Positions 53,998 to 59,900 of a stretch of DNA of 64,000 bases are shown here, one piece after another. A program made the position numbers and the translations under genes. Position 1 is the first letter of the stretch. Each line of letters starts with the position of its first letter. The DNA comes from Chrysemys picta bellii (Eukaryota). The DNA is taken from positions 25,420,001 through 25,484,000 of the forward strand of contig NC_088807.1 of the NCBI RefSeq assembly GCF_011386835.1, in the 5' to 3' direction. The notes beneath the pieces are model-generated. The model was not told the origin of the DNA. It did no database searches and saw only the letters and a list, made by a program, of their open reading frames with translations.

Positions 53998-56900
53998 ATG
54001 GGCGGGGCTGGGCCCCAACTCCAGCACTGGGGGGCGGAGAAAAGTGAAGCCTGCGGAATCAGGTGATTTCCCCCCCCCCAAGGCCGGGGGTCAGAGGGGG
54101 CGGGTGCTTCCTGGGGCAGTTGAGGATGTGGGGCAGGGAACGGGACGATCTGGGACTAAGGGGGTGCAGCTGGGGTGGGGAGATACTGGGGGAGGGGCAA
54201 TTGGGGGAGATCCAGGGGGTCAGGGTGGGGGGTATGGGGGCAGTGCATGTAGGGGGGGAGCTCTAGGGGAAGGCGGGGGGCTGTGGGGGGTGGGAAAGAG
54301 GAGCAGATTCCAGGGGGATAAGGCTGCCTGAGGAAGGGACCCCCCCATATTTAACCCCACCATGTATTCTCCCCCCCCAGCTGCAGCGCTCACCAGAGCC
54401 CCCACCGGGCCCCTGAACCCCCAATCCCGGCAGCAGAGACGGCACCGGTGGCTGGCGGTAAGTGGGGGGGCGCTAGGGGGCACCGCGCCCTCCCTGCCCC
54501 AGGCAACGGGGGGCGCCGCGCTGTGCCCCATTAACTCTCCCCTCTCTGCCCCACAGTGAACGTGGTGGTGGTGGTGGACGGGAGCTGTATCCTCCAGTAC
54601 ACGCATCGGGACTCCCCCTGCCGTTGTCTCCGCCGCGCGGACACCCTGCTGGCCCGCCGGCCACCCCCCTGCTACGGGGCTGCTGCCCCCTGCAGCCCCC
54701 CCGCCGCCGGACCCCCCCTCTCCCGCCGGGCCCGAGGCCTGGGCGTCCGCTGCTGCGCTGAGTTTTGCCTGGGGGAGGAAGAGGAGCGGGCGGAGCGGAG
54801 ACCCCGCCACCAGGGGGCGCCTCCCCGCCGCGCCCCCCCGCCCGGCCGGCTGACGCCGGTGCCCCTGCCCCGCAGCGCCACGGGGCCCTGGTTTACGGTG
54901 GAGGCGCCGGAGGACGGTGGACCCGGGGCCCAGGTGGCCAGGATCTGGGACCGGGGGCGCTGCCCCCTGCTGGAGGAGGGCGACCTCGTGGCCAAAGTGA
55001 ACGGGGCCGACGTGAGGGGCCTCGGGCCCCGGGAGGTGGAGAACGTCCTGCAGCAGCACACGCGGGCCGGGGACGTCATCCTGCTGGTGGAGCGGAGAGG
55101 TAATGGGGGCTGCGGGCACTGGGGGGGGCCCACTCCTCACTGCTTCACTTCCTGCCTGACCCACTAGGGGGCGCCGGGGGCCCTGGCTGCTGCACTTCCT
55201 GCCTGACCCACTAGGGGGCGCCGGGGCCCCTGGCTGCTGCACTTCCTGCCTGACCCACTAGGGGGCGCCGGGGGCCCTGGCTGCTTCGCTTCCTGTCTGA
55301 CCCACTAGGGGGCGCCAGGGGCCCTGGCTGCTTCACTTCCTGCCTGACCCACTAGGGGGCGCCGGGGGCCCTGGCTGCTTCGCTTCCCGCCTCACCCACT
55401 AGGGGGCGCCGGGGGCCCCTGGCTGCTTCGCTTCCTGCCTGACCCACTAGGGGGCGCCGGGGGCCCTGGCTGCTTCACTTCCCGCCTGACCCACTAGGGG
55501 GCGCCGGGGGCCCTGGCTGCTTCGCTTCCTGCCTCACCCACTAGGGGGCGCCGGGGGCCCTGGCTGCTGCACTTCCCGCCTCACCCACTAGGGGGCGATG
55601 GGGGCCCCTGGCTGCTTCGCTTCCCGCCTGACCCACTAGGGGGGCGCCGGGGGCCCTGGCTGCTTCACTTCCTGCCTCACCCACTAGGGGGCGCCGGGGC
55701 CCTGGCTGCTTCACTTCCTGCCTGACCCACTAGGGGGCGCCGGGGCCCTGGCTGCTTCACTTCCTGCCTGACCCACTAGGGGGCGCCGGGGGCCCTGGCT
55801 GCTGCACTTCCCGCCTGACCCACTAGGGGGCGCCGGGGCCCTGGCTGCTTCACTTCCTGCCTCACCCACTAGGGGGCGCCGGGGGCCCCTGGCTGCTTCA
55901 CTTCCTGCCTGACCCACTAGGGGGCGCCGGGGGCCCTGGCTGCTGCACTTCCTGCCTCACCCACTAGGGGGCGCCGGGGGCCCCTGGCTGCTTCGCTTCC
56001 TGCCTGACCCACTAGGGGGCGCCGGGGGCCCCTGGCTGCTTCGCTTCCTGCCTGACCCACTAGGGGGCGCCGGGGGCCCTGGCTGCTTCGCTTCCTGCCT
56101 GACCCACTAGGGGGCGATGGGGGGCCCTGGCTGCTTCGCTTCCTGCCTGACCCACTAGGGGGCGATGGGGGGCCCTGGCTGCTTCGCTTCCTGCCTGACC
56201 CACTAGGGGGCGCCGGGGGCCCTGGCTGCTTCGCTTCCCGCCTCACCCACTAGGGGCGCCGGGGCCCTGGCTGCTGCACTTCCCGCCTGACCCACTAGGG
56301 GGCGCCGGGGGCCCTGGCTGCTTCGCTTCCTGCCTCACCCACTAGGGGGCGCCGGGGGCCCTGGCTGCTGCACTTCCCGCCTGACCCACTAGGGGGCGCC
56401 GGGGCCCTGGCTGCTGCACTTCCTGCCTGACCCACTAGGGGGCGCCGGGGGCCCTGGCTGCTTCACTTCCTGCCTCACCCACTAGGGGGCGCCGGGGCCC
56501 TGGCTGCTTCACTTCCTGCCTGACCCACTAGGGGGCGCCGGGGCCCTGGCTCCTTCGCTTCCTGCCTCACCCACTAGGGGGCGCCGGGGGCCCTGGCTGC
56601 TTCACTTCCTGCCTCACCCACTAGGGGGCGCCGGGGGCCCTGGCTGCTTCACTTCCTGCCTCACCCACTAGGGGGCGCCGGGGCCCTGGCTCCTTCGCTT
56701 CCTGCCTGACCCACTAGGGGGCGCCGGGGGCCCTGGCTGCTTCACTTCCTGCCTCACCCACTAGGGGGCGCCGGGGCCCTGGCTGCTTCACTTCCTGCCT
56801 CACCCACTAGGGGGCGCCGGGGCCCTGGCTGCTTCACTTCCTGCCTCACCCACTAGGGGGCGCCGGGGGCCCCTGGCTGCTTCGCTTCCTGCCTGACCCA

Positions 56901-59900
56901 CTAGGGGGCGCCGGGGCCCTGGCTGCTTCGCTTCCTGCCTGACCCACTAGGGGGCGATGGGGGGCCCTGGCTGCTTCACTTCCTGCCTGACCCACTAGGG
57001 GGCGCCGGGGGCCCCTGGCTGCTTCACTTCCTGCCTGACCCACTAGGGGGCGCCGGGGGCCCCTGGGTGCTGCACTTCCCGCCTGACCCACTAGGGGGCG
57101 CCGGGGGCCCTGGCTGCTTCGCTTCCTGCCTGACCCACTAGGGGGCGCCGGGGGCCCTGGCTGCTTCGCTTCCTGCCTGACCCACTAGGGGGCGCCGGGG
57201 GCCCTGGCTGCTTCACTTCCTGCCTCACCCACTAGGGGGCGCTGGCTGTTGGGCAGCTTCTGGCCTTTCCCAGCAGGGGGAGCTGTGGGGTGTTGGTAAT
57301 TTTGGGGGACTCCGTACTGATTGACCCCCCCCCTCTTTTCTTCCCCTCCCCGCAGGTCCTGGACTCCGCCAGTCCCCCCTGGAGCCCCTGTTCTCCATCC
57401 CCTCCCCCTGCCGGGATCCCCCCCGGGTGGGGGGGCCCGGGGCTCTTGGGGGGGTCCCAGCGGGGATACCCTGGCCGTCACCAGCTTTGTGGGGCCTGAA
57501 CCCAGGGACGTGCTGCTGTGCCCGGCCCGCTGCCGCGGGGGGGAGGCCCGGAGGCCGCGACGCCCCCAGCCCGCAGGGGGCCCCAGGGAGCTGGGGGGCA
57601 GCATAGCCCCGGACAGCGCCGGGAGAGCAGGTGAGTGGGGGGGGTGCACGGTGGGAAGGGGGGGTTGGAAGCGGAGGGCTGCAGGTTGGGGGAGGGGGCT
57701 ATGGGGGATGGGTTTGGGGGTGCTTAGGACTGGGGGAGTCTGCAGGGCTGGGGCGTCTGCGGAGCGGTGGGGGAGGGGCTGAGGGCACAGCTGGGGGGGA
57801 GACAGGCTCCACGGGGGAAGTGAAGGGGGGCAGGGGGTCTGCGAGGGTGGAAGATGGGGGGCATGCGAAGAAGGGGGACCATGATGGGGGGATGATGGAG
57901 GCAATCGGGGGGGGCTGCAGGGGGAGGGGCAGGGAGCTGGAGGGGCAGGGTGACTCCTGGGTGGGGTGGGGGACATGGGGAAGCTGTCTCCCCCCATACT
58001 CCCAGCTATCCCTTCCCCCTCCCCCCCCCCCGTTTCTGAGCCCCCTCCCCCCCGCCTGGCACAAGAGACCCCATTGTGTTCTGCTCCCTGACCCATGTCA
58101 GGCTCCGCCCCCCTCCCCAGGCAGCTGGCGGGCACCCATGGGGGGGGGGGGCGCGACCTGTTCCACCCCATAAAGCTCTGGAATTTCTCCTCCCCCCTCC
58201 CGCTCCCCACAGCACCCCCTGCTGGGAGAGGCCTGGCGCTCCCCCCCCAGCTCCCAAAGGGTTAACCCCCCACGCCCACATTCCCCCCCCCCCCAGTGTC
58301 CTTGACTTTCTCAGCCCAGCTTGTTTGTCCTGGGAAACTCCTCGGGGACGAAGGCGGCCGAGCTGGGGGGCCCGTGGACACCCCACCCCACACCTGTGCT
58401 CCCCCAGGAACCAGGGGGCTCCCCCGCCGCCCCACGGCCGGCCATGCTGCAAAGGGTCCAGTCCGTGCTGCGAAACGTCCAGGGTTTGAACCGACCCCCC
58501 CATACCCTCCTCTTGCCCCCCCAGCTTTCCCCACCGGCCTTTCTCCTCCTGTCCTGGTTTTGGGGGTGCGGTGGGGGGGCTGCATCCTGAGGGAGGGGGG
58601 TTTCTCCCCACACACAGGGAGAGTCTGTAACTTTGAGTGGGTGGTTTTGGGAGGGGAGATAGAAATGGGGGGGCTGGGAGTGTCTCTCACCCCACACGTG
58701 ACCCCCCTCCCCCCCGAATGCTGCCACCTCCATACTCAGACTCCCCTTGACTCCCCTACCCCGCACGGCCCCCTGCTGCCAGGCCCCCCCACCTCAGTCA
58801 GGCCCCTCTCCCCACAACCCGCCCTGCACCCCCTCCCCCCCACATAAACCCCTCTCCCCCACCCCGCACACAGCCCCTTCTGCCCCCCCGCCCCCCTCGG
58901 CCCTCCACATCCCACACTTCGCCTCCTACCCCACAACCAACTCCCCCTCCTCTCCCCGTCTGTCTCCTGCCCAGACCTCCCCCCACCCCACTGGGTAAAT
59001 ATTGACCCCCGATAAGAGCTTCAAGTTTGAAAGCTTGGGGGGGGGAGGGGAGAATTTGGGTGGAGCCCTGTCTGGAGGAGGGGGAGGGTCAGTGTTTCGG
59101 GGGGGGGGCAGGGTTGGGGGGGAAGGGCGGTTGCTGGGGGAGGCCGATGCCGGGGGTGGGGCCTCTGGTCTCTAGAAGGGGTTTGGGTCTGGAGGGGAGG
59201 TTGGGTCAGTGCAGGGGGGGTCTGGTCTCTAGAAGGGGTTTGGGTCGGGGGGGAGGTTGGGTCAGTGCAGGGGGGGTCTGGTCTCTAGAAGGGGTTTGGG
59301 TCTGGGGGGGGAGGTTGGGTCAGTGCAGGGGGGGTCTGGTCTCTAGAAGGGGTTTGGGTCGGGGGGGGAGGTTGGGTCAGTGCAGGGGGGGTCTGGTCTC
59401 TAGAAGGGGTTTGGGTCGGGGGGGGGAGGTTGGGTCTGGTCTCTAGAAGGGGTTTGGGTCGGGGGGGGAGGTTGGGTCAGTGCAGGGGGGGTCTGGTCTC
59501 TAGAAGGGGTTTGGGTCGGGGGGGAGGTTCAGTCAGTGCAGGGGGGGGTCTGGTCTCTAGAAGGGGGTTGGGTCTGGGGGGGAGGTTCAGTCAGTGCAGG
59601 GGGGGTCTGGTCTCTAGAAGGGGTTTGGGTCTGGGGGGGAGGTTCAGTCAGTGCAGGGGGGGTCTGGTCTCTAGAAGGGGTTTGGGTCAGGGGGGGAGGT
59701 TGGGTCAGTGCAGGGGGGGTCTGGTCTCTAGAAGGGGTTTGGGTCGGGGGGGAGGTTCAGTCAGTGCAGGGGGGGTCTGGTCTCTAGAAGGGGTTTGGGT
59801 CTGGGGGGGAGGTTGGGTCAGTGCAGGGGGGGTCTGGTCTCTAGAAGGGGTTTGGGTCGGGGGGGAGGTTCAGTCAGTGCAGGGGGGGTCTGGTCTCTAG

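Follow-up and report, generated by a model that had tools for sequence, protein, structure and literature searches.

An intronic 47-bp minisatellite of predicted two-part CTCF sites in the painted turtle

In this article, I discuss a minisatellite of the painted turtle, Chrysemys picta bellii, that repeats a CTCF core motif every 47 bp on the + strand at positions 55140-57242 of a 64-kb window, the window being the whole stretch of DNA analysed (CM062334.1:25,420,001-25,484,000). Its closest described counterparts are the DXZ4/Dxz4 and Firre macrosatellites, which are likewise built head to tail with a co-oriented CTCF motif in every unit, in which the CTCF motif is conserved between species while unit size and copy number change (PMC3491370), and in which, as far as the available text of PMC5899087 goes, the orientation of the array sets the direction of its contacts. 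Similarly, in two human variable number tandem repeats (VNTRs), one in an exon of HRNR and one made of tRNA units at 1q23.3, predicted or bound CTCF sites become more numerous as copies are added, and a function as boundaries has been suggested (PMC10234305; PMC4041453); closely spaced CTCF motifs are also known from the clustered CTCF/BORIS sites called 2xCTSes, where motifs with linkers of 30-40 bp give double footprints in human cells (PMC4562119). A literature search turned up neither CTCF chromatin immunoprecipitation sequencing (ChIP-seq) from a turtle nor any study of turtle CTCF tandem repeats. Anatomically, the array appears to be a CTCF tandem array on the scale of a minisatellite, and I consider it reasonably probable that it is an old intronic minisatellite of two-part CTCF sites, expanded in one lineage and predicted to bind CTCF, whose copy number is probably a by-product; as such it is a well-described candidate at a single locus rather than a discovery.

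The repeat unit in the painted turtle and its relatives

Tandem Repeats Finder (TRF) reports one single array at these positions, with a period of 47, 44.7 copies, 93% matches, 1% indels and a score of 3552, and cutting it at the core yields 45 units of 45-48 bp, the final one truncated, which fall into 26 distinct sequences. Head-to-tail units of about 10-100 bp are the mark of a minisatellite or VNTR, and the array fits that definition. The delineation of the feature draws on this TRF call together with the unit list, the consensus and matrix scans and the variation in each column of the aligned units. Each unit reads from an upstream-motif-like decamer through 8 nt to the CTCF core CCACTAGGGGGCGC and on into a spacer of G/C runs, with the two-part site itself taking up ~31 bp of the 47.

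All 45 units carry CCACTAGGGG on the + strand, and 39 of them, again all on the + strand, match exactly the 14-mer CTCF consensus CCASYAGRKGGCRS, written in the code of the International Union of Pure and Applied Chemistry (IUPAC), while the six that do not either end in GA (four) or have an indel in the G run (two). Over the whole 64-kb window there are 44 matches to CCASYAGRKGGCRS, against 0.29 expected from dinucleotide-preserving shuffles. A 19-bp CTCF matrix (MA0139.1), used in an approximate form so that its scores are approximate too and the case rests on the IUPAC consensus scan, gives 13.6-17.2 bits (p<1e-5) to 43/45 units, all on the + strand and none on the other. The copies in an array are not independent, and chance is therefore judged per unit, where a score of this kind comes up at a rate of ~0.1% (21 of 20,000 composition-matched shuffles of the unit). 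A preliminary description of this DNA had proposed same-orientation CTCF motifs in an array of ~2.1 kb, with a core matching the CTCF consensus in nearly every unit, and had called for a motif-matrix scan; both proposals are borne out, and the scan it suggested scores high.

The upstream motif of CTCF, assigned to zinc fingers (ZF) 9-11, is CTGCAGTTCC-like (PMC12885311), and engineered two-part sites consist of TGCAGTTCC, 8 nt and CCAGCAG (PMC11194110). In the array, TGCACTTCC begins 17 bp before the core CC, the same offset as in the published two-part sites, and the 8-nt gap from TTCC to the core CCA is exact in all units. Identity to the upstream decamer reaches 9/10 in 9 units (CTGCACTTCC), 8/10 in 18 (CTTCACTTCC) and 7/10 in another 18 (CTTCGCTTCC), the TGCAC type being confined to the 9 best of the 45 and TTCAC or TTCGC standing in the remaining 36. 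By chance a 9/10 match would turn up at a rate of 4e-5 to 9e-5 per position, and at the canonical offset the 16 other CTCF-like hits in the window reach 6/10 at most. The pairing of core and upstream motif is thus far beyond chance, and a 9/10 match at the canonical offset, with none in the 16 other hits, argues that the unit is, to judge by its letters, a full two-part CTCF site by origin and not a GC-rich look-alike that arose by chance. Overlapping the upstream decamer is an ETS-like ACTTCC(T/C)G, found in 27/45 units, the other 18 having GCTTCC. The preliminary description had put a ZF9-11 motif at about this spacing and an ETS-like element in each unit: the spacing proves exact and the TGCAC type is limited to nine units, and the ETS claim fails for two-fifths of the array.

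Variant units are well mixed along the array, with 2.8-3.5 differences per pair at every lag (mean 3.1) and no higher-order repeat. Coding potential was rejected, since 47 is not divisible by 3, TGA and TAG occur in every unit, and the intron is spliced out. The splicing is seen in a 1,469-nt contig (run X14) with two junctions, one from 54456 to 54556 and the other from about 55099 to about 57356, each with GT..AG ends; the contig is therefore spliced RNA and the array intronic. The array fills 93% of this 2,256-bp intron (55100..57355, + strand), whose first 40 bp, 55100..55139 (+), form a stub with a degenerate 'unit 0' (GGGCACTGGGGGGGG) that can be aligned to a better-kept core (GGCACTAGGGGGTGCT) in another turtle, Emydura macquarii.

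Emydura, a side-necked turtle, has an orthologous intron of 377 bp (L001:11079-11455) that contains a 52-bp x 2.8 repeat of a homologous unit and, at its 5' end, the further degenerate unit that matches the Chrysemys stub. Copy number, which the preliminary description had proposed to compare in related species, does differ, at 44.7 in Chrysemys vs 2.8 (3-4 units) in Emydura, in a comparison that covers these two turtles. From the decamer through the core the units of the two species are identical at 28/31 positions (~90%, by hand count), and the upstream motif of the three Emydura units matches at 9, 8 and 9 of 10 positions with TGCA in all three. The presence of a homologous tandem in this intron means that a short tandem of the two-part site predates the deepest split among living turtles. 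Two frequent variants that create CpGs in the painted turtle (A to G and T to C) are derived relative to Emydura and would fit GC-biased repair in a recombining region.

Four public runs offer short-read contigs that break inside the array, with junctions and rough depths as their usable content; in them the left flank leads into array contigs under three other species labels, and the right flank does so too under two, while one array contig of one species stands at ~40x the depth of its flank, a rough hint given that depth is not copy number. The first array unit is also present in a Logan contig (L005) of what is presumably a further turtle (94% protein identity), and the first 1 kb of the same intron in a more distant relative (61% protein identity) shows no motif. 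The yield of protein word searches for orthologues was confined to Chrysemys and Emydura, a single Lepidochelys isoform, a single skink protein and a handful of Logan contigs.

Predicted binding and competing accounts

An old minisatellite of CTCF sites would have begun as ~3-4 units before the side-necked and hidden-necked turtles diverged and grown to 45 in the lineage leading to the painted turtle, the likely cause being replication slippage or unequal exchange in GC-rich, minisatellite-dense distal DNA. The window agrees with CM062334.1 of assembly GCA_011386835.2 without a mismatch over 20,003 shared bases, and the array stops 1.48 Mb short of the end of this 26.96-Mb record. Its surroundings are GC-rich (~73%) and crowded with minisatellites (seven arrays in 14 kb, by TRF), and on the + strand a GC hairpin can form between two adjacent units (z = -2.0); such array-packed surroundings and such a hairpin fit slippage or unequal exchange. 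Because a strong forward core is kept in each unit, CTCF, and possibly its germline paralogue CTCFL/BORIS, is predicted to bind at many units wherever these are unmethylated and nucleosome-free. The two-part motif is common to lamprey, chicken and human (PMC5504073), and turtle CTCF should therefore recognise the units; BORIS arose in early amniotes (PMC5973138), which means that turtles may have it as well. If the units are bound, the N-termini of CTCF would face higher coordinates, towards PLP2 and the record's end, by the orientation rule described in PMC12885311, and cohesin would be stalled when it arrives from that side, much as at DXZ4/Dxz4 and Firre. How many units could be filled at once is a separate matter, since the linker of ~27-28 bp between motifs of 19-20 bp is near but outside the 30-40-bp range of the double footprints, and neighbouring units may or may not be occupied together. 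The array is plausibly CTCF-bound, and several signs point to passive expansion over a tuned super-site, with copy number probably a by-product of repeat dynamics and not a selected setting.

A number of observations weigh against this account and should be set out together. The upstream motif has eroded from TGCA to TTCA/TTCG in 36/45 units (80%), the core-adjacent CpGs have become TpG in three Emydura units, a decay that suggests germline methylation in that species, and the array, with a CpG observed/expected ratio of 0.39 that does not rise above its flanks, lacks the look of a hypomethylated island. The ~90% identity between Chrysemys and Emydura units is not above that of the flanking intron (89%) or the exons (83-90%), and so gives no sign of extra constraint. 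Within the array the common variants spare the first 13 core positions, which is expected in ~10% of cases by chance with seven variant events, and constraint from this source was dropped too. Selection on the array is not evident from the computed comparisons. Finally, 47 bp from centre to centre is tighter than in the documented double sites, and full occupancy may be sterically impossible.

Several of these points would also suit a repeat that is methylated and packed into nucleosomes in all tissues and binds nothing, its motifs being passively copied relics. The CpG ratio, which is below island level, the decayed core CpGs of Emydura and the eroded upstream motif all lean that way, as does the RNA contig, which shows clean splicing and no array transcript. 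However, both core-adjacent CpGs survive in 40/45 painted-turtle units and the motif scores are high, and the core has no CpG at position 2, the methylation-sensitive one; on balance I regard a silent repeat as unlikely. At the other extreme, the preliminary description had envisaged a VNTR-built, one-directional CTCF super-site that could act as a loop anchor or insulator with a strength varying with copy number, taken here as a selected super-anchor tuned by copy number. The 45 co-oriented strong cores speak for it, as do the retention of the array under several species labels, the precedent of DXZ4/Dxz4, in which the CTCF motif is the sole conserved part (PMC3491370), and the presence of the upstream motif, which has been linked to insulator-grade sites (PMC12885311; PMC11417384). 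That same motif is nonetheless degraded in four-fifths of the units, Emydura makes do with just 3-4 CpG-decayed ones, conservation is no greater than in the flanks, and the position is intragenic, within an intron, and not between regulatory domains, all of which leaves a selected super-anchor, in my estimation, a rather poor prospect.

The remaining alternatives concern where the unit came from and what reads it. It is very unlikely that the array belongs to a dispersed family of ~48-bp CTCF-motif repeats spread by a mobile element in the manner of SINE B2 and did not expand locally: a search allowing <=5 mismatches in 26 nt found no further copy elsewhere in the 64-kb window or across 22 kb of Emydura, the Emydura locus is orthologous, with a 377-bp intron and conserved flanks, and the ~40x flank depth mentioned above fits one locus of ~40 copies, with the same caveat that depth is not copy number. 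I think it highly improbable that a different factor is the relevant reader, be it an ETS protein on CAGGAAGTG (reverse strand) or a PRDM9-like hotspot protein that drives instability. The ETS-like element in 27/45 units and the minisatellite-dense region would suit such a factor, but the ETS core is missing from 18 units and from 2/3 Emydura units (which have AATTCC and AATCCC), its overlap with the CTCF upstream motif accounts for it more simply, and a PRDM9 motif, which evolves fast, would not have lasted since the deepest split among turtles. An old, passively expanded minisatellite of CTCF sites continues to be the account I favour.

Host intron, gene and neighbourhood

The exon upstream of the intron (54556..55099, + strand, 544 nt) encodes a divergent PDZ segment of LOC112060679 (protein P0001), as judged from the spliced contig, its translation, 99% identity to P0001 and a Pfam PDZ match that is weak (E=0.003), with a GLGF loop that is not clear. 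The downstream exon (57356..57630, +) is bounded by the RNA contig, which splices onward from ~57630, a point that P0001 does not reach because its stop codon comes earlier. Gene models differ in how they read these two exons, the frame of the PDZ exon in the Lepidochelys 'MAGIX isoform X3' model differing from that of Chrysemys P0001, and the MAGIX isoform X3 model of Lepidochelys kempii shares the downstream exon. In Emydura the gene order is GPKOW, the orthologue of the host gene, a PDZ gene and a MARVEL (PLP2-like) gene, and the host gene lies between GPKOW and PLP2, which is the MAGIX position. The preliminary description had located the array inside MAGIX, and this is roughly right and serves well enough as a name for the locus: the array does lie in an intron, and synteny and the Lepidochelys kempii model support the name, although the National Center for Biotechnology Information (NCBI) annotates the gene in Chrysemys as LOC112060679 and not as MAGIX.

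Single CTCF-like sites stand on either side of the array. Two exact consensus matches in the upstream exon, at 54807..54820 (+) and 54960..54973 (-), were found by both the consensus and the matrix scans; they are convergent and 150 bp apart, just 5' of the array in the PDZ-encoding exon, and the Emydura copy of the first has its CpG changed to TpG. On the other side, 28 bp past the array, is a near-consensus core (13/14) at 57270..57283 (+), with a matrix hit at 57267 of 15.8 bits. Elsewhere in the window, identical CTCF-like 19-mers (TCCCCTCTAGGGGGCGCTG) occur at 44368-44430 and 50581-50599 on opposite strands, the former copy within a small local tandem duplication, and thus possibly a dispersed repeat, and the latter adjoining a hairpin element (50345-50535) noted in the preliminary description.

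Further G-rich minisatellites lie 3' of the gene at 59164-60179, 60777-60933, 61244-62387 and 62970-64000, with units of 57 bp, 34 bp and 37/76 bp, and the second assembly gap (62388-62887) falls within the 37/76-bp arrays. That these might be weaker CTCF arrays was considered and rejected, the best score among the other six, in the final 14 kb of the window, being 8.6 bits. A Rfam gathering scan of the whole window matched no family. The window also holds an inverted duplication of ~16.8 kb, with arms at 320-17144 and 30791-46614 that are 95-99% alike and a spacer of ~13.6 kb, which may be a genuine palindrome or have arisen in assembly; the spacer includes an assembly gap (20730-21229), the right arm overlaps GPKOW (43998-48609, - strand), and the duplication explains why CTCF-like hits come in mirrored pairs (e.g. 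12853/35198).

Place among known systems

What would it mean for the array to be occupied? Strong CTCF sites would follow one another at 47-bp intervals across 2.1 kb, far denser than in mammalian CTCF macrosatellites, and the locus would serve as a natural experiment to learn how many neighbouring CTCF molecules pointing the same way one cohesin barrier can use, as well as a test of barrier strength against copy number, for which the contrast of 45 vs 3-4 units already exists between turtle lineages. A bolder idea, to which I give little credence, is that the array represents an undescribed class of turtle minisatellite whose unit of ~47-49 bp is the footprint of one CTCF molecule, created by footprint-sized duplications that CTCF or CTCFL provokes (e.g. 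through breaks or stalled forks at the edges of the footprint) and acting as dense, one-directional and copy-number-variable cohesin barriers. Were it true, this array, with ~45 copies vs 3-4 in Emydura, would be one datable example of the class. The array also raises a question that can be put to whole genomes, and on which I found no paper, namely whether CTCF sites are unusually prone to become minisatellites in turtles.

Returning to the systems with which I began, the resemblance to DXZ4/Dxz4 and Firre is one of plan and not of scale or location, since those are macrosatellites with kilobase units at other loci whereas the turtle unit measures 47 bp and sits in an intron; moreover, CTCF binding and the superloops of the inactive X have been measured there, whereas binding to the turtle array is a prediction. 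The human VNTRs share with it the scaling of CTCF motifs with copies, but in them the motif takes up little of a far longer unit, which measures 7.3 kb in the tRNA repeat and is coding sequence in HRNR. The 2xCTSes are nearer in spacing, yet each pairs two motifs across a 30-40-bp linker and most are found at promoters and enhancers, as compared with 45 motifs and 27-28-bp linkers in an intron. In its tens-of-bp unit, interspersed variants, species-varying copy number and array-rich neighbourhood the array is very much like ordinary GC-rich subtelomeric minisatellites, and it differs from them in that its unit amounts to a complete two-part transcription-factor site.

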